From the NCBI RefSeq assembly GCF_000006765.1, contig NC_002516.2: a stretch of DNA of 64,000 nucleotides; one strand, 5' to 3'. A model generated the notes under the pieces. That model worked only from the letters and a program-made list of their open reading frames with translations. It searched no databases and was not told where the DNA came from. Positions within the stretch are counted from its first letter, which is position 1; each line of letters begins with the position of its first letter. Below, piece after piece: positions 6,854 to 52,420 of this stretch. The position numbers and the translations under genes were made by a program. This stretch comes from Pseudomonas aeruginosa PAO1 (GTDB lineage Bacteria > Pseudomonadota > Gammaproteobacteria > Pseudomonadales > Pseudomonadaceae).

Positions 6854-7001
6854 GCCTTGCGGCACCCCTGCGCCGAAGCGCGCGGACGGAGATCACTGGG
6901 AATGGATACTGACGAAAAACGCCGGAGCTGATCCGGCGCGAAGCGCCCATGGTAAAGCATCCGCGGCGAGCTGACGAGCGGTCAGTTCGCCCGGCCTCGC
7001 T

Positions 7002-23268: not shown

Positions 23269-23598
23269 GACCGGGTAGAAAGTGAAGGATTCGGAAGAAA
23301 ATCTACCCGCCCCGCTCCCCCGGTATGGCGAGAAGCAAGATTTTTTCAGATTCGGGTGCCCCGAAAAGACGCGAACCCGACCGACCGATCACCCCTCCAT
23401 GCCCGTCGCGACAACCCGATCGGTCGGGTCCGGACTTGCAACATACCGCCGTGCCGATATCACGTCGCCTACCGGAACAAGGAGTTGTTCTTTTCGACGA
23501 ACGTCCTCGCCTCCCGCTATCGCCCGCCCATCGCGACCTCGTATGCTCGCCGGGCGATGCCTCATGCCAGCAACCCCCACCCACAAGGGAGCAACACG

Positions 23599-33449: not shown

Positions 33450-33526
33450 TGGTAGGCACGATTGGATTCGAACCAACGACCCCCACCATGTCAAGGTGGT
33501 GCTCTAACCAACTGAGCTACGTGCCT
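33450..33526 (-). tRNA. tRNA-Val(GAC)
   Basis: AGGCACGTAGCTCAGTTGGTTAGAGC-ACCACC-TTGACAT-GGTGG...GGTTCGAATCC...CCTACCA; 77 nt with CCA. Confidence 0.98.
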
Positions 33527-46250: not shown

Positions 46251-47330
46251 GTGATCCCCGTCGCCCCTCTTCCCCTGATCGTCCCGCTCATCTACCTGTC
46301 GTCGTTCGTCGCCGGCATCTGGCTGCTGGTCTGGCTATCGCTCCTGGCCTTCAGCCCGCGCGCGCGCCAGCGCTTGCGCCGCCGCTGGCCGAGCCGCGGC
46401 CTGCTGATGCTGCTCCTGCTGATCCCGTTGGGACTGCGCGCCTGGCTGGAGATCGGTCTCTGGCAGTACGAGCGCGAACGTGCACGCGAGGAAGCCGCGC
46501 ACAGCGCCGTGCTCGAGCGCCCTACCCGCCTCGGAGGCATCGAGATGCCTGCCGGCACCCGGCTGAAGCTGGAACTCAAGCACCAGCCGGAAAGCTTCCG
46601 AGAAGCCGAATTCCCCACCCCGGTGACGATCCGCGGCGTCGCCACCCGCCACCTGCAACGCTGGCTGCAGAGCGAGCAGGACAACCCGCAGGACCCATGG
46701 AAAACCACCGGCGTCCATCCCACTTCGCTGCGCCTGCGTGGCGAGGGAGTCGCCGAGATCGAAGGCTGGCGTTGCGACGCCAGCCAGGAAATCGCCTTCG
46801 CCAGCGAGCGCGACGGGCGTCCCGCCGCCTTCGAAGGCTGTAGCCTGGCGATCGGCAACCGCGCCGACGACATCGACTTCCCCGCCGGTGCGCGATTGTT
46901 CGCCAGCGATGGCATGGTCTACACCGACGGCTACCGCGACGCCGAGCGCTGGCGGGTAATGCCGGAAACCGGGCAACGGGTGTCGGTGCGCGGCATCGCG
47001 CTGAGCGGCGGCGCCCTGGCCTTCGACCGCGACCGCCGCCTGTACGGCCTCGGCGGTACGGTCCTCGCCGAGGCCTTGCAACTGGGCGCCTGGCACTACC
47101 CGGCAGGCACCGAGGTCAGCCTTTCACCCCGCGCCGCCTGGCGCGCGCAACATCCGCACGCCTGGCTGTTCAGTCCTACCCGCGAAGCCGCTTCGCATGC
47201 CTCCGGCGAGCGCCTGGAACACGGCGTCTCGCTGTTGCAGACGCTGGACGGCCAGGAACTTGAGCGCCTCGACAACCGCGCGGCAGGGGTCATCGACTTC
47301 ATCGAACTGGAGATCGGCGACGAACGCTGA
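46251..47330 (+). CDS. Membrane-anchored hypothetical protein
   Basis: Two N-terminal TM segments, beta-rich remainder. Confidence 0.8.
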   Translation: MIPVAPLPLIVPLIYLSSFVAGIWLLVWLSLLAFSPRARQRLRRRWPSRGLLMLLLLIPLGLRAWLEIGLWQYERERAREEAAHSAVLERPTRLGGIEMPAGTRLKLELKHQPESFREAEFPTPVTIRGVATRHLQRWLQSEQDNPQDPWKTTGVHPTSLRLRGEGVAEIEGWRCDASQEIAFASERDGRPAAFEGCSLAIGNRADDIDFPAGARLFASDGMVYTDGYRDAERWRVMPETGQRVSVRGIALSGGALAFDRDRRLYGLGGTVLAEALQLGAWHYPAGTEVSLSPRAAWRAQHPHAWLFSPTREAASHASGERLEHGVSLLQTLDGQELERLDNRAAGVIDFIELEIGDER

Positions 47331-47480
47331 ACCTGCGCCGCGCGGTTATCTGAGGCTCAGCCAGCAGCGCGGCGGGAAGGGCAATCAGGAAATGGACGAG
47401 GCGCATGGACCCTCCGTGGCCATCACTGCGGTATGGCTAGGCATTTTCCCGATCCTGCGGGAAAAGCGATGCCGCTTCGC

Positions 47481-47640
47481 TTGCCGCACAGCGAAACAGG
47501 GCTAGCCTTATCAATGTGACTTTCTCCTATGGTGGTCACCAAAGCCCCGGGGGCCGCTCATCCCTCCGGGGCTTTCCCCCCGCCTGCTGCCTCTCCCCTC
47601 CTTGATACAGCAGCCCATCGCAGTTCAACGAGGAAACCCG
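47481..47640 (+). promoter_or_regulatory. sigma70-like promoter and structured leader with three hairpins
   Basis: TTGCCG-16-TAGCCT; stems at 47516-39, 47541-75 and 47584-613; pyrimidine-rich loops containing CTCC. Confidence 0.5.
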
Positions 47641-47733
47641 ATGAAACTCAGCATTGTCGCCCTGGGCCTGTTGTCCATGGCAGGGGTGCTCATCTGCACC
47701 TATCTGATCCTGAAATCGCTCAGCGCCATCTGA
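47641..47733 (+). CDS. 30-aa hydrophobic peptide (candidate type I toxin-like small protein)
   Basis: GAGGA SD; MKLSIVALGLLSMAGVLICTYLILKSLSAI*. Confidence 0.55.
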   Translation: MKLSIVALGLLSMAGVLICTYLILKSLSAI

Positions 47734-47872
47734 TATCGCTCGTGCACGAAGCTGTGGATCGCCCATGGGCAGATCCAGCAGTCCGCGCGTAGGATGGGCA
47801 GGCCCGCTTCCTGCCCATTTTCCGCCAGGAAAAGAGAGGAATTCCTTTCCGAGATTTCCACAGAGGTCATGG

Positions 47873-48250
47873 ATGAAAAAAAGCCCCCTGCTGATACTGA
47901 GCGTACTCCTCGCCGCGTGCGGCCCCGACAAGCTGATTTCCGACCTGCCGTCGCCGAACGGGCAATACCACGTCGAGGTTCGGAAATGCCCGGAGAAAGG
48001 TTCGATCACCTGGGGCGAAGAAATACAGGTCTCCCTCCTCGAAACCGGGAAATCGGAAAAGTGCCATGCAGTCGTGCGGTCGCTGGCGCAATTCGACCTG
48101 CGCGCATCCGCGGACCAATTGCAACTGGAGTGGCTGTCCGATACGGAACTCAGGGCCTGGCACCCTAGCTTCGAGCCCGGGAACCAACCGAACGGCTCGC
48201 GCCTGAAGCACGATGCGCCGGTGAAGATGGTCTTTGCGCCGAAGCGCTGA
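47873..48250 (+). CDS. Lipoprotein
   Basis: GAGG SD; MKKSPLLILSVLLAAC lipobox. Confidence 0.8.
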   Translation: MKKSPLLILSVLLAACGPDKLISDLPSPNGQYHVEVRKCPEKGSITWGEEIQVSLLETGKSEKCHAVVRSLAQFDLRASADQLQLEWLSDTELRAWHPSFEPGNQPNGSRLKHDAPVKMVFAPKR

Positions 48251-48338: not shown

Positions 48339-48629
48339 TTAAAGACTGGCAAATATGAAACAAAGCGGCGCCATCCACAGCGCCAGGTTGATCGTCCATT
48401 GCAGCGCTCTTTCGCGAGCGCTTCCCAGCTTTCGCTGCTGGAGCACGAATGCCAACGCAGGGGAATGCAGCAACAGGGCGCAGGCAGGAAAGACCAGCAG
48501 GTAGGCGATCAGCCCAGGCGCATTCATATTGGGATAGCTATGGCTGACGAGCGATCGCCAGTACGCCACCAGGAAAGCGCTCGCGACCGCGAGGCTGAGT
48601 CCCAGGCTGATGCGGCTATACCACTTCAT
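48339..48629 (-). CDS. Three-TM small membrane protein
   Basis: GGGAGG SD; hydrophobic helices. Confidence 0.75.
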   Translation of the reverse strand: MKWYSRISLGLSLAVASAFLVAYWRSLVSHSYPNMNAPGLIAYLLVFPACALLLHSPALAFVLQQRKLGSARERALQWTINLALWMAPLCFIFASL

Positions 48630-48722
48630 CGAGACCCTCCCGACGCGCCTTCCGGACCTACGCCGATCGCTCCGGAAAACGGCCCGATCCGCCTCGCCTC
48701 ACCCTGCTTCAGTCAGAGCGGC

Positions 48723-49319
48723 TCAGGGCTTCCGGGGTTCGTTGCCGAGCAGACGATCGAGTTCGCCCATGACGCGATCGCTCTTGGCCTCTTCGAGCTT
48801 GCGCCGGGCCTCGGCGAGATTGGCCTGGGCGCGCTCCATCTCGACCATGCCGACGGCGGTGATCACCGCCTGCAATGGCACGCCCCTGCCGGTGGAGCGC
48901 ATGCCATTGCGTTCGCGCTCCTGCGGCGCGCAGATGAACTGGAGGACAGCCTCATGGCTTTCGTTGGGCAGCGGGGTCCAGCCCTTGGCGAAGGTGAACT
49001 GGAGGTTCGTGGGTTGCCCGTTGTTGGAGAAGGTCTTGGCGTTGACCACCTTCACCTCTCGCGTATCGCAGCGGTACTGGTGCGCGCTGAGCAGATGGAA
49101 GGAGTCGAACAGCATGGCGATCTGCACCTGCCAGGCGTTTTCGATACCCGGCACGGGTGCCAGCGAATCGGCATCGGCCAGGAACACGTCAAGCTCGGCA
49201 GGGTCGTCGCCCTTGTGTACCACCCACCAGTCTTCGGCCCAGGCATGGCCGGATGCGGCCAGCAGCGCGGCGCACAGCCAAGTCGCGGCACTGCGGGAAA
49301 CCTTGCGATATACGTTCAT
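48723..49319 (-). CDS. Exported protein, 198 aa
   Basis: AAGGAAGG SD; signal peptide ending AWA; C-terminal part of ORF 48723..50480. Confidence 0.8.
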   Translation of the reverse strand: MNVYRKVSRSAATWLCAALLAASGHAWAEDWWVVHKGDDPAELDVFLADADSLAPVPGIENAWQVQIAMLFDSFHLLSAHQYRCDTREVKVVNAKTFSNNGQPTNLQFTFAKGWTPLPNESHEAVLQFICAPQERERNGMRSTGRGVPLQAVITAVGMVEMERAQANLAEARRKLEEAKSDRVMGELDRLLGNEPRKP

Positions 49320-49399
49320 GTCACCTTCCTTGTGGGGAAATGCTTCCCTGCCGATCGTGGATAGGGGCGGCACCCGGCGCCCCCCTGAGCGAACACCCG

Positions 49400-50434
49400 C
49401 TATTTCAATGACAGCGGCACGCCCCAGACCGGGTCTTCCATGCCCTGCTTGCGCAGCGGCGTGATCTGCAGGGGCTGGAGTCTGGACAGCAGTTGCCGGT
49501 GCTTGTCGCTCAGGGCCCGCTGGGCGATCAGGGACTGGCTGAAGTCCATCGGCGCCGGCCAGGTGTAGACGGTCAGGTTTTCCAATGGGCATTCGATCTT
49601 CTTCGGATCGATCGCCCGGCACTTCGACTGCTGGTACTTGTAGCCGGGGGTCTTCAGGTGCATGCGCGGGGCCAGCAGCAATTGCCCGCCCTGCACGGTG
49701 AAGCTGGCCAGCGCCTTGTCGACCGGCAGGCGCGCCTGGACCTTGATCGAGGGCACGTCGCGGGAGTCGGTCTGCTGGTAATAGCCGGCCTGGGAGCCCT
49801 GGGTCGTCTGCGTGTATTGCTGCTCGCCCCAGCTCACGCAGGCGCCCGAGGCCACATGCACGGCGGTGCAGACCTTCTCGGTCTTGATCTCGCTGCCATA
49901 GGTGGCATCTTTCCAGACTTCTTCCCGGTAGTACTCGCGATACAGCTCGGGGGACAGGTACGCGGTGCCGTTGGCGCCATGGCCCGAACCGGGCGGACCG
50001 CTGCGGGCGCCGACCTGGTCGAGCAAGCCATGGATCTGGTAGTCGTCGCCGCCGGTCAGCAGGTACTTGCCGGGCGGCAGGATATGCACCTCGAAGGCCT
50101 TGAACAGATAGGTCTCGTCGGGCTTCCGCTGCAGCGCGTTGGTCTGGAACTTGCGGCCGAAGGTCACCTTCGGGTCCTTCTCGTACTCCCAGATCGCCGT
50201 TGGCGTCCACTGGGTCATGGTCAGGGCATCGCTCAGGGACTTGTGCGGCATCACGTCGGCCACCAGTACCACGGCCATGTTCCCCTTCAGCGCCTGGTCC
50301 ACCAGGTCCAGCATCTGCGCGTTGCGCGGATCGTCCATGCTGCCATAGGCGCCCGAATCGAGTTCCGACACGCAACCGGAAAGGCAAAGCAGCAAGGCGG
50401 CGGAAAGGGCAAAACGCGGGCGGGGCAGTCTCAT
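49400..50434 (-). CDS. Lipoprotein, 344 aa
   Basis: MRLPRPRFALSAALLLCLSGC lipobox at ATG 50434. Confidence 0.8.
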   Translation of the reverse strand: MRLPRPRFALSAALLLCLSGCVSELDSGAYGSMDDPRNAQMLDLVDQALKGNMAVVLVADVMPHKSLSDALTMTQWTPTAIWEYEKDPKVTFGRKFQTNALQRKPDETYLFKAFEVHILPPGKYLLTGGDDYQIHGLLDQVGARSGPPGSGHGANGTAYLSPELYREYYREEVWKDATYGSEIKTEKVCTAVHVASGACVSWGEQQYTQTTQGSQAGYYQQTDSRDVPSIKVQARLPVDKALASFTVQGGQLLLAPRMHLKTPGYKYQQSKCRAIDPKKIECPLENLTVYTWPAPMDFSQSLIAQRALSDKHRQLLSRLQPLQITPLRKQGMEDPVWGVPLSLK

Positions 50435-50699
50435 GCATCGATCCTTGATAGAGGCTGGTGCGGGTCGTCGAACGGCCCATCTTACTGGCCCATGCCAGGA
50501 TCGCAATATTTCAAATGGACTAGGTCGGCAGGGGCACACCGGCAGGGCCAGGAGCTGCCACGGCCCGCCGGCCCTCGTTGGTTCTACGCCTACGCAGACC
50601 TCCAGGCGTTGGGATCGGCGTTGTCTGGCAGGCCAGGCTCGGGAAACGTGCACATCCGGAAGAGTGGTAATCCCGCGCGCATTGAGGCCACGCCAGTCT

Positions 50700-52420
50700 C
50701 TTCGGAGAGTATCCAGATGTACCAGGTGTAAGCACTATATTACGGAGGTTTTGTCAGTGACTGAAAAACGGTCGCAGCCTACCCTTACCGCTGCAGTTTT
50801 TAATGGGCCGAGCAAGCTAGACCTCCTGCCCGTCCGGTAGATGCGATTCAGCAATCGCTCCGCTTGATTTCTAGTCAGTGGGCAGCTAAATCCATGCTCT
50901 GACCCGATAATACCCGGTAGCGAATCGAGTCGTGGCACTATTGTCGATTCCTCCGAAATATCCCGTGCCCCATACTGCCGCTCCAGTTCCAAGCCGAATA
51001 TTCAAGCTACCCACTTCAACCTGAGCCCCACTGCCTTTATGCCCTCCATCATTGAAATAACTGGGCATGACAATGTTCCATGTTGATGGACTCGATGACC
51101 TTGCAAACTCAACGACCACCCGACGCGGCGACCTCTGGAGTCCATGACTCAGGGTATACAAACTATTTGAAGAAACAGAAAACCAGTCTGACTCAAAATC
51201 CGGGACTCCTCCCAGATACACTTCAAACTGATAAGCTCCCGACGTCGTAGAAGACGTCTCCCTGAATAGATTACCCAGTATTCTTCGACCTCCCAAAACG
51301 ACTTGACTAGTATAACCGGAGGCGGCTGGCGCACTATACACAGGAACACGCTCCGTCCAGCCGGAGGAGCCTGCTACGGCTTTCGCCAGCAGGATTGTTC
51401 TGTAATAACAAAAATGAGTCGTTCTGTTCGTGTACAAAAGAACTACATGTGGTGTACCTCCCTCAGAATAAATATAGGAGAGAGAAGGGGCTACGAGAAT
51501 ATCGGTAGAGTCACCATTTTGTGCAGTCACATTACCCTGATCAGTCCATGTGCCGCCGTCGTCCAGACTTATAAACTGACGTAACGCTCCTCCGGCACCA
51601 GATCCTACTCTGGCTACAGCCAGAATTACGCCATCTCCCACAGGAAGGTAAGAAGTCTCATTGTATGGTGTGTTCCCGCTGTAGATCGTGCTTCCTTCGC
51701 CCCAAGTTTCTCCGCCATCAGAAGACTCTAGCCATTTCAGTTCATAATTGACTCCCGTCGCCGCGTAAAGAGGAATCACATAGCGTGCCCCTACTTGAAA
51801 ACTTTTTCCATGAGCAAAATTATAATCCGCCCCACCTCTAGCCAATGTGAATTTATGTACCCATGTCACACCTGAATCATCAGATACATAGACCTTCACC
51901 TCTCCTGTTTCATAAACCGTCGAGGCCGCGACGATCCTTCCGCTAGGCATCGTCCCACCAGCTACATCTCGAAAATCCTGTCCTCCCGCCTGGGCAACTA
52001 TGGTAGGCGCACTCCAAATACCACCCTCCAGTTTACTGAAAACAACACGCCCATCACTACCACCTACATGCTCTGTTGCCCGCCTATATATTAGGTACAA
52101 ACTTCCATCTGACAATATATCCATTTGGCCAAAATGATCATAATATGATTCATACAGAGCCTTTCCCACTAGCCGATGCGGAATATCAAAATAAGTATTC
52201 ATCCTTCACTCCTTCGGTCAAATTAGGCCAACACACTCGCCCCACTCAACAGCTCTACCCTACAAACCTTGACTACCCGGCCAACTATAAAATTCTTCAA
52301 AAATAAATATTGAAAAAAATTTCTGATGAAAAACTCATGAATGAATACAGGTGCCGGACCGACGGCAGACTTATAATCATCTCGGCATCCCACCAGCCCC
52401 GGCTCTTGCACGCATTCACA
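50700..52420. mobile_element. AT-rich horizontally acquired islet (no integrase visible)
   Basis: Visible compositional shift relative to the flanks; adjacent to the 5' end of dusA; boundaries approximate. Confidence 0.55.
50886..52202 (-). CDS. nanA: BNR-repeat sialidase-like protein (PA2794 pseudaminidase/neuraminidase)
   Basis: Asp boxes SDDSGVTW, SSDGGETW, SLDDGGTW; 438 aa; AT-rich DNA and atypical codon use. Confidence 0.85.
   Translation of the reverse strand: MNTYFDIPHRLVGKALYESYYDHFGQMDILSDGSLYLIYRRATEHVGGSDGRVVFSKLEGGIWSAPTIVAQAGGQDFRDVAGGTMPSGRIVAASTVYETGEVKVYVSDDSGVTWVHKFTLARGGADYNFAHGKSFQVGARYVIPLYAATGVNYELKWLESSDGGETWGEGSTIYSGNTPYNETSYLPVGDGVILAVARVGSGAGGALRQFISLDDGGTWTDQGNVTAQNGDSTDILVAPSLSYIYSEGGTPHVVLLYTNRTTHFCYYRTILLAKAVAGSSGWTERVPVYSAPAASGYTSQVVLGGRRILGNLFRETSSTTSGAYQFEVYLGGVPDFESDWFSVSSNSLYTLSHGLQRSPRRVVVEFARSSSPSTWNIVMPSYFNDGGHKGSGAQVEVGSLNIRLGTGAAVWGTGYFGGIDNSATTRFATGYYRVRAWI

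Follow-up and report, generated by a model that had tools for sequence, protein, structure and literature searches.

A putative toxin-like membrane-peptide cassette of Pseudomonas aeruginosa and its temperate phages, with a leader predicted to close its own ribosome-binding site

What is encoded between PA2789 and PA2790 of Pseudomonas aeruginosa PAO1: a small regulatory RNA (sRNA), the toxin half of a type I toxin-antitoxin (TA) system, or a small membrane protein of another kind? This question was raised by an initial annotation of a 64,000-nucleotide (nt) stretch of the PAO1 chromosome (contig NC_002516.2 of assembly GCF_000006765.1; referred to here as the window). On the basis of the letters alone, that annotation described a promoter, a structured leader able to hide its own Shine-Dalgarno (SD) sequence and a short hydrophobic open reading frame (ORF) on the plus strand at 47481-47733, and proposed a type I TA system or an RNA-switch-controlled small membrane protein. 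Window coordinates are used throughout unless PAO1 is specified, and are converted to PAO1 coordinates by adding 3,100,000. This offset is anchored by the 3' end of tRNA-Val (window 33450, minus strand), at which a strong 3' end was mapped by term-seq (PAO1 3133450, minus strand; supplement of PMC6786874), and by the Northern probe for SPA0079 (PAO1 3123200-3123500), which matches window 23391-23408.

The explanation presented here, which is held with about even confidence, is that the locus represents a self-contained phage-type (moron-like) cassette for a 30-residue inner-membrane peptide, whose synthesis is gated in cis and whose putative toxin-like action would be limited by dose. The toxin-like element of this explanation follows from the conserved occlusion of the start site, the low expression and the prophage setting of the cassette. 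To our knowledge, Pseudomonas has so far yielded few type I-like toxins and few small membrane proteins that have been characterised. The new elements are the link between an sRNA candidate and a phage ORF, the evidence for coding, the conserved gating structure and the sharing of the cassette between phage and host, the last of which goes beyond the initial annotation. The locus offers a catalogued 'sRNA' re-read as the leader of a protein gene, a compact and comparatively supported example of translational gating in cis, and a peptide with a conserved face, shared by phage and host, that may take part in lysogeny, in competition between phages or in quorum-linked physiology.

The peptide gene and the extent of the cassette

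The ORF, whose ATG is located at 47641, occupies 47641-47733 (including the stop codon) on the plus strand, and its 30 codons specify the product MKLSIVALGLLSMAGVLICTYLILKSLSAI. It was found as described and was shown to recur in four lineages, i.e. the PAO1-type form of the window (lineage A), a P. paraeruginosa-type form (lineage B), and the forms carried by F116/E220 phages and by Presto-type phages (lineages C and D). Lack of conservation had been named beforehand as an outcome that would speak against the proposal; in every lineage, the ORF was retained at exactly 30 codons and free of insertions and deletions (indels), and in the comparison with lineage B conservation reaches precisely as far as the stop codon. 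Among 14 distinct ORF sequences, the first, second and third codon positions contributed 19, 9 and 23 variable sites, respectively, while differences within a lineage were mostly synonymous and the ratio of non-synonymous to synonymous substitution rates (dN/dS) was 0.20-0.52 between distant lineages. Population variants were represented by single, mostly conservative substitutions, with one rare variant exhibiting a disrupted 3' half. These patterns indicate that the ORF is a real coding gene for a single-helix membrane peptide, and a purely non-coding reading of the locus is unlikely, since the ORF is clearly under coding selection. In some genome records, it is listed as a hypothetical protein.

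Nine columns of the peptide alignment (M1, K2, S4, A7, A14, C19, Y21, L22 and K25) are invariant, and conservation over residues 3-26 displayed a 100-degree periodicity (permutation p = 0.001), indicative of conserved residues on one face of a helix. AlphaFold2 predicted a helix over residues 3-29 with a predicted local distance difference test (pLDDT) score of 89; the mean Kyte-Doolittle hydropathy of residues 3-24 is 2.4, and tryptophan is absent from the peptide family. The profile of PHROG 38460, a family without assigned function, was matched over its full 30-residue model by the peptides of the window (E = 1.8e-5), lineage B (6.6e-7), Presto (1.7e-10) and F116 (3.3e-22). Profile searches of Pfam, NCBIfam, PADLOC and PDB returned no match (PDB noise only); the sole Pfam/NCBIfam match at E values up to 10, that of the Presto peptide to PglL_A (11.6 bits, compared with a cut-off of 25), is attributed to chance. 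A lipobox was considered and rejected, as Cys19 is preceded by Ile.

The conserved block that contains this ORF was mapped to 47472-47733 in the intergenic region between PA2789 (46251-47330) and PA2790 (47873-48250), almost exactly the span originally proposed, with flanking DNA on both sides exhibiting random-level identity. When chromosomal and phage copies were compared, identity was 51-52% in the 60 nt upstream, 81-85% in the promoter and first hairpin of the leader, 61-65% in the rest of the leader, 63-70% in the ORF and 49-54% in the 60 nt downstream. The corresponding values between lineages A and B were 45, 90, 86, 91 and 55%, and the promoter and first hairpin retained 81-91% identity across lineages. 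The DNA of lineages A and B is unalignable to the left of ~47472 and to the right of the stop codon; promoter, leader and ORF are 86-91% identical between them, and PA2790 just 65%. The relative in lineage B, detected by an exhaustive HMMER search, is a 30-residue protein with 80% identity to the window peptide; P. paraeruginosa and PA7-like strains encode it in the same place, 3' of their PA2788 and PA2789 orthologues.

When the 271-nt query was compared with phage genomes using blastn, 74-94% of its length was matched at ~70% identity by F116, vB_PaeP_E220 (Hollowayvirus) and Presto, and each of these three phages possesses an annotated coding sequence for a 30-residue protein (e.g. F116p68). 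The phage gene is integrase-proximal and flanked by a gene for a 171-residue hypothetical protein and a gene for an SOS-response-associated peptidase, and one or other phage type was present on 17 IMG/VR prophage contigs. The neighbouring genes of the phage copies have no relatives in the window, so the cassette alone is common to phage and chromosome. Between the two phage lineages (C and D), the flanking backbone is 88-90% identical, compared with 66% for the leader interior and 71% for the ORF, which suggests that the interior of the cassette is a divergence hot spot or has been exchanged. Chromosomal-type and Presto-type products were found together in the genome of strain CCBH4851.

The exact window peptide was present on at least 1000 P. 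aeruginosa contigs. A plasmid search yielded no match to the cassette, and a scan of a genome collection with the peptide alignment returned none in the genomes of other species, its sole match being a mis-binned P. aeruginosa contig. Over 2.5 kb, this contig (CALFYG010000163.1, filed under an 'uncultured Micrococcales' metagenome-assembled genome) shares 99.8% identity with DNA of P. aeruginosa, and it probably reflects mis-binning or contamination. A metagenome scan recovered P. aeruginosa-group DNA only (seven PAO1-type copies and one lineage B copy), and word-based as well as exhaustive protein searches recovered P. aeruginosa-group variants only. Relatives of PA2790 in Achromobacter and other Pseudomonas were shown by a synteny check to have no adjoining cassette, the window holds no paralogue of the cassette, and the additional matches obtained when viral contigs were scanned with the promoter motif and the first hairpin motif were unrelated. 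The whole cassette is common to P. aeruginosa and some of its temperate phages, and the sister species P. paraeruginosa has a diverged copy.

Promoter, leader and closure of the ribosome-binding site

The promoter had been described as TTGCCG and TAGCCT hexamers separated by 16 nt, and these are present on the plus strand at 47481-47486 (-35) and 47503-47508 (-10), with a predicted transcription start at ~47515-47516. The pair and its spacing recur in the four diverged lineages, the four lineage representatives being identical in the whole -10 hexamer and in the -35 hexamer up to its fifth base, and no other promoter-like site occurs at a homologous position in all four. As they score only 7/12, the hexamers were not called in a generic promoter scan, and the single sequence considered by itself is weak evidence. 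The -35 hexamer is located centrally in an inverted repeat read from the sequence (GCTTCGC at 47474-47480 and GCGAAAC at 47491-47497), the arms of which are invariant in the four lineages, chromosomal and phage, whereas its 10-nt centre varies outside the -35 hexamer. This repeat looks like a candidate operator, i.e. a site for a dimeric or host regulator. The C that directly precedes the TA of the -10 hexamer is likewise invariant, which, in the light of sigma-S promoters, would fit stationary-phase control and the modest response to acyl-homoserine lactones (AHLs). Several other possibilities were considered for this region. An alternative -10 element (TATGGT) inside the first hairpin is conserved and lacks a usable -35 element, representing a minor possibility only, while a sigma-54 promoter and a las/rhl-type box were both rejected by eye, as GG at -24 and a CT-N12-AG arrangement, respectively, are missing.

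Three hairpins had been claimed for the leader, and RNAalifold analysis of 19 distinct leader sequences returned all three. Hairpin 1 (47516-47539, plus strand; GUGAC...GUCAC, with loop CUUUCUCCUAUGGUG) contains six pairs that are invariant over the 19 sequences and thus show no covariation for or against pairing. Hairpin 2 (47541-47575, plus strand) is a 13-bp GC-rich stem found in both the minimum free energy (MFE) and the centroid structures. Hairpin 3 (47584-47613, plus strand) consists of a CUGCUG/CAGCAG stem, whose invariance over the 19 sequences speaks neither for nor against pairing, and an 18-nt C-rich loop. The stem sequence of hairpin 2 is wholly different among the four lineages with pairing retained: seven pairs are changed on both sides, 96% of cells are paired compared with 36-57% in slid-partner controls, and the covariation score was reached by none of 500 shuffles. 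Comparative analysis thus supports hairpin 2 as a conserved RNA structure backed by covariation, with hairpins 1 and 3 being predicted. Hairpin 1 and hairpin 3 both have conserved, C/U-rich loops, and the leader as a whole folds modestly better than shuffled sequences (z = -2.5). Across lineages the leader has acquired several indels, compared with none in the ORF. Since hexamers, spacing, hairpins, the complementarity between the hairpin 3 loop and the SD sequence, and the ORF recur together in comparisons from which the flanks drop out, these features are taken as real.

Some leader indels open upstream frames in certain strains, giving rise to 43-, 67- or 72-residue gene calls that fuse the translated leader to the 30-residue peptide; these calls appear to be annotation artefacts. 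A long-range closing stem (47512-47519 with 47648-47656), which forms part of the window MFE structure, was rejected as its 5' partner is not conserved, and an RsmA GGA motif was rejected as it is not kept in the phage lineages. Searches with Rfam 15, including its riboswitch and thermometer families, returned nothing at the gathering threshold in the window, phage or lineage B loci, and noise only at E values up to 10.

The SD sequence (GAGGA, 47630-47634, plus strand) is positioned 6 nt 5' of the ATG, and ACGAGG is invariant in 19 sequences. The anti-SD sequence CCTCCTTGA, located in the loop of hairpin 3 at 47597-47605 (plus strand), is complementary at 8/9 positions to TCAACGAGG (47625-47633), which spans the SD sequence. 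The resulting SD-closing helix (47597-47605 with 47625-47633, plus strand) is mutually exclusive with hairpin 3 and is part of the MFE structure of the full window leader. As a sub-alignment of the anti-SD region produced by MAFFT did not place the helices in register, per-lineage folds rather than a column-wise count are given for this helix. Each of the four lineages was predicted to pair its SD with its anti-SD sequence; for B, C and D, the closing helix represents the MFE structure of the segment, and the SD sequence is paired with a probability of at least 0.9 in the full leader. In lineage B the closed fold had a predicted advantage of 1.0 kcal/mol over the hairpin 3 fold, and in lineages C and D one of 4.5-7.7 kcal/mol. 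In lineage D, the helix is kept by other bases on both strands, with a new G-C pair in place of the C-C mismatch of the window and a shifted UGAA:UUCA block. The alternative fold hiding the ribosome-binding site, as put forward in the initial annotation, is therefore represented by a conserved closing element in four lineages and prevails over the hairpin 3 fold in three of these.

SPA0080 and the downstream neighbourhood

The leader corresponds to a catalogued RNA candidate. SPA0080 was reported as an intergenic sRNA candidate at PAO1 3147500-3147600 (plus strand), between PA2789 and PA2790, with 7 reads in PAO1 and 25 reads in PA14, all on the plus strand (Ferrara et al. 2012, PMC3349714). 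This bin equals window 47500-47600, i.e. the strand and coordinates of the cassette leader. Near its 3' end, term-seq identified a cluster of 3' ends at PAO1 3147644-3147657 (plus strand), of which the dominant one, 3147657, was 2.9-fold higher with AHLs (Thomason et al. 2019, PMC6786874). Both texts are silent on the ORF, and the conserved structure and phage relatives are likewise not described there. In the window, the cluster is located at 47644-47657 (plus strand), and its dominant end at 47657, which is at +17 from the A of the AUG, marks a species of ~140 nt. The shared strand, coordinates and 3' end identify SPA0080 as the 5' leader of the cassette.

A distance of +17 from the AUG is the classical toeprint distance of an initiating ribosome, and the last 75 nt of the leader contain 33 C compared with 16 G residues. 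Possible causes of the end at 47657 are Rho-dependent termination on the C-rich, G-poor untranslated leader, or exonuclease trimming back to a ribosome positioned on the AUG.

Could SPA0080 be the only product of the locus, with its C-rich loops pairing with the G-rich ribosome-binding sites of other mRNAs and the ORF being incidental? The initial annotation had allowed that the leader alone might be a C-rich-loop sRNA, and this alternative is borne out insofar as the leader corresponds to a catalogued sRNA candidate with a defined 3' end before most of the ORF, conserved C/U-rich loops in hairpins 1 and 3, and a promoter and hairpin 1 that constitute the best-conserved part of the cassette. 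However, it does not account for the coding selection on the ORF: conservation halts at the stop codon, the 30 codons are indel-free in contrast to the leader, the second codon position is the least variable, changes within lineages are mostly synonymous and conservation follows a helical period. An RNA without a coding role is consequently considered very improbable, while a dual-function RNA is possible.

Neighbouring genes bear on another alternative, in which the small ORF acts as a leader peptide or upstream ORF that controls the gene behind it. In the phages, the stop codon is followed at a distance of 10 nt by the start of the SOS-response-associated peptidase gene, which has the same orientation, and some annotations merge the chromosomal ORF with PA2790. 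Nevertheless, the downstream gene is not the same in the two settings, being the peptidase gene in phages and, in the chromosome, the PA2790 lipoprotein gene at a distance of 120-139 nt with an intervening hairpin. Furthermore, PA2790 relatives in other genera lack the cassette, and a conserved transmembrane helix with one conserved face is unlike leader peptides; this alternative is given hardly any credence.

The intervening hairpin (GGGCAGG/CCUGCCC followed by AUUUU; 47796-47821, plus strand), a predicted fold outside the conserved cassette, may terminate the full-length mRNA of PAO1-type strains and is not kept in lineage B. PA2790 itself (47873-48250) is 65% identical between P. aeruginosa and P. 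paraeruginosa, and relatives with 46-65% identity were found in unrelated contexts in Achromobacter, Ochrobactrum/Brucella (one on a plasmid) and other Pseudomonas; judged by these comparisons, the gene appears to evolve rapidly and to have a patchy distribution. The region on the right-hand side of PA2790 (~48339-50700) is polymorphic among strains, carrying either genes for products of 96, 198 and 344 residues (as in the window) or a single gene for a product of 643-663 residues with a weak match to the Pfam family Phage_tail_beta. The landmarks in the window that served to set the PAO1 offset include the Pseudomonas sRNA P13 (Rfam RF01665, 105 bits) at 6919-6994 (minus strand) and tRNA-Val (GAC) at 33450-33526 (minus strand).

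Proposed action and relation to known systems

The favoured explanation, a cis-gated peptide with putative toxin-like action, would operate as follows. A weak sigma-70-like promoter (47481-47508), which is conserved and sits inside the invariant repeat, would start the mRNA near 47516, and the nascent leader would form hairpins 1, 2 and 3, as predicted by folding and, for hairpin 2, supported by covariation. Once the SD sequence has been transcribed, the loop of hairpin 3 (47597-47605) would pair with 47625-47633, so that hairpin 3 is lost and the ribosome-binding site is closed. Most transcripts would then remain untranslated and end just inside the ORF at the published 3' end (47657), yielding the ~140-nt SPA0080. 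The translated fraction would supply a single transmembrane helix between Lys2 and Lys25, whose conserved small-residue face, together with Cys19 and Tyr21, may pack on itself or on a host membrane protein. The peptide would act like a type I toxin that is restrained by its leader instead of a dedicated antisense RNA; temperate phages bear the cassette near their integrase end, and the host retains a copy at a fixed chromosomal site.

Several observations weigh against this explanation. With regard to the closing helix, the window allele favours the open hairpin 3 fold by 2.9 kcal/mol (a fold in which the AUG itself is part of a small CAUCG/CGAUG stem), 212 of 1000 dinucleotide-shuffled versions of the C-rich window leader pair equally well with the SD window, and the anti-SD duplex is non-significant in any single sequence, being equalled by 15-21% of shuffles. 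Comparative support is derived from approximately three independent lineages and consists of changes in register and bases, not of column-by-column covariation; as the loops were moreover left unaligned by MAFFT, the altered helix of lineage D is supportive rather than conclusive. At the level of the peptide, dN/dS is ~1 between lineages A and B, a value based on just eight changes, and the supplement of a ribosome profiling (Ribo-seq) benchmark holds no entry at the coordinates of the locus. Similarly, the published supplements examined contain no start site at these coordinates and no full-length transcript. Nor is SPA0080 among the sRNAs tabulated as Northern-validated by Ferrara et al. (2012, PMC3349714). 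Its Northern probe targets the 3' arm of hairpin 2, and the published probe sequence, GGGAAAGCCCCGAGGG, is one base shorter than the complement of window 47563-47579, CCCTCCGGGGCTTTCCC, which may be the reason for the lack of validation.

The position of the phage gene in an integrase-proximal accessory region, like that of lysogenic-conversion genes, suggests a different, non-toxic role, in which the peptide would be a specific modulator of a host membrane protein, e.g. a prophage superinfection-exclusion or defence factor, and the leader would just tune its amount. The analogue is the 30-residue PfsE of Pf4, a small protein that binds PilC; small prophage proteins that block pili are documented (PMC8764522), and F116-type phages reportedly use type IV pili. 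A helix face bearing invariant Ser4, Ala7, Ala14, Cys19, Tyr21 and Lys25 suggests a specific helix-helix contact, the divergence of the cassette interior between lineages C and D (66-71% identity, compared with 88-90% for the backbone) is typical of conflict genes, and the ORF is intact on at least 1000 contigs. However, the peptide has no sequence relation to PfsE, whose YxWGW motif (residues 16-20) is absent in every lineage, and it has no PADLOC match. Exclusion factors are, furthermore, normally produced at a steady level in lysogens, and for such factors conserved closure of the ribosome-binding site combined with very low read numbers (7 and 25) would be unusual; the chromosomal copy is also retained in strains irrespective of such prophages. 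The modulator role is regarded as the main alternative, and on the doubtful side.

Whether the cassette belongs to the type I TA class depends on both its peptide and an RNA antitoxin. On the toxin side, the proposal of the initial annotation held up, as the cassette is an independent unit encoding a small (<~60 residues) hydrophobic one-helix peptide, and its mRNA can fold so as to sequester the ribosome-binding site (through a helix present in four lineages and favoured in three). The antitoxin side did not follow. An antisense promoter had not been recognised by the initial annotation, and a minus-strand promoter-like site common to all four lineages was indeed not found: lineages A, B and D have a weak one over codons 4-6 that scores 7-8/12 and lineage C has none there, although promoter prediction is weak evidence and does not by itself prove the absence of an antitoxin. 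Rfam antitoxin families had no match on either strand of the window or phage loci (a weak minus-strand match to IhtA, at 20.6 bits compared with a threshold of 76, is noise), the antisense-RNA catalogue of PMC4180829 has no entry at the locus, and the four representative peptides had no match to Pfam/NCBIfam type I toxin families at E values up to 10. As neither an antitoxin promoter nor an RNA family nor a catalogue entry was found, the locus is not filed as a type I TA system; it resembles the toxin half of one, and its class membership is unproven.

A canonical type I system whose RNA antitoxin escaped detection would require either a cis-antisense RNA running from within the ORF across the SD sequence and hairpins 3 and 2, or a trans-acting sRNA encoded elsewhere. 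The size of the peptide, its single hydrophobic helix, the structured leader and SD sequestration all fit the class, and the weak minus-strand sites of lineages A, B and D are co-located. Hairpin 2 also yields a strong hairpin when its reverse complement is folded, the exchange of hairpin 2 sequences with retention of shape is the pattern expected of a region that determines pairing specificity, and copies of the cassette coexist in one genome (CCBH4851). Conversely, lineage C lacks the minus-strand site, which reaches no more than 7-8/12 in the other lineages, the T-run following the antisense hairpin is not conserved, SPA0080 reads are restricted to the sense strand, and the antisense catalogue, Rfam antitoxin and Pfam/NCBIfam toxin searches were all negative at this locus. 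Such a hidden antitoxin is thus judged unlikely. A bolder form of the toxin-like explanation, rated distinctly unlikely, would make the cassette the founder of a new class, an 'antitoxin-less' type I-like module, mobile between phage and chromosome, in which a membrane toxin is controlled by the cis anti-SD switch only and the aborted SPA0080 regulates in trans through its C-rich loops, the whole constituting a quorum-sensing-responsive, phage-derived dual-function RNA.

Among known systems, type I TA modules (e.g. Hok/Sok, TisB/IstR-1, AapA1/IsoA1 and BsrG/SR4 of a Bacillus prophage) resemble the cassette in encoding a hydrophobic single-helix peptide of 20-50 residues behind a structured leader with a sequestered SD sequence, in their low expression and in their occurrence on prophages and chromosomes. 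They differ in that no antisense or trans-acting RNA antitoxin and no curated toxin-family match was detected for the cassette, where gating would be purely in cis. Dual-function RNAs such as SgrS/SgrT offer a parallel in that one transcript could supply both a short regulatory RNA and a small protein, whereas the ~140-nt species is without a known trans target and may be a mere aborted mRNA. PfsE (PA0721, Pf4), a small P. aeruginosa protein that likewise has 30 residues and is encoded by a prophage, is analogous solely in size and setting, as the cassette peptide lacks its YxWGW motif and belongs to a separate family. A further counterpart is PHROG 38460, exemplified by F116p68, a homologous peptide encoded downstream of a homologous promoter and leader, from which the window copy is distinguished by its chromosomal location (between PA2789 and PA2790) and by a protein identity of 43-50%.

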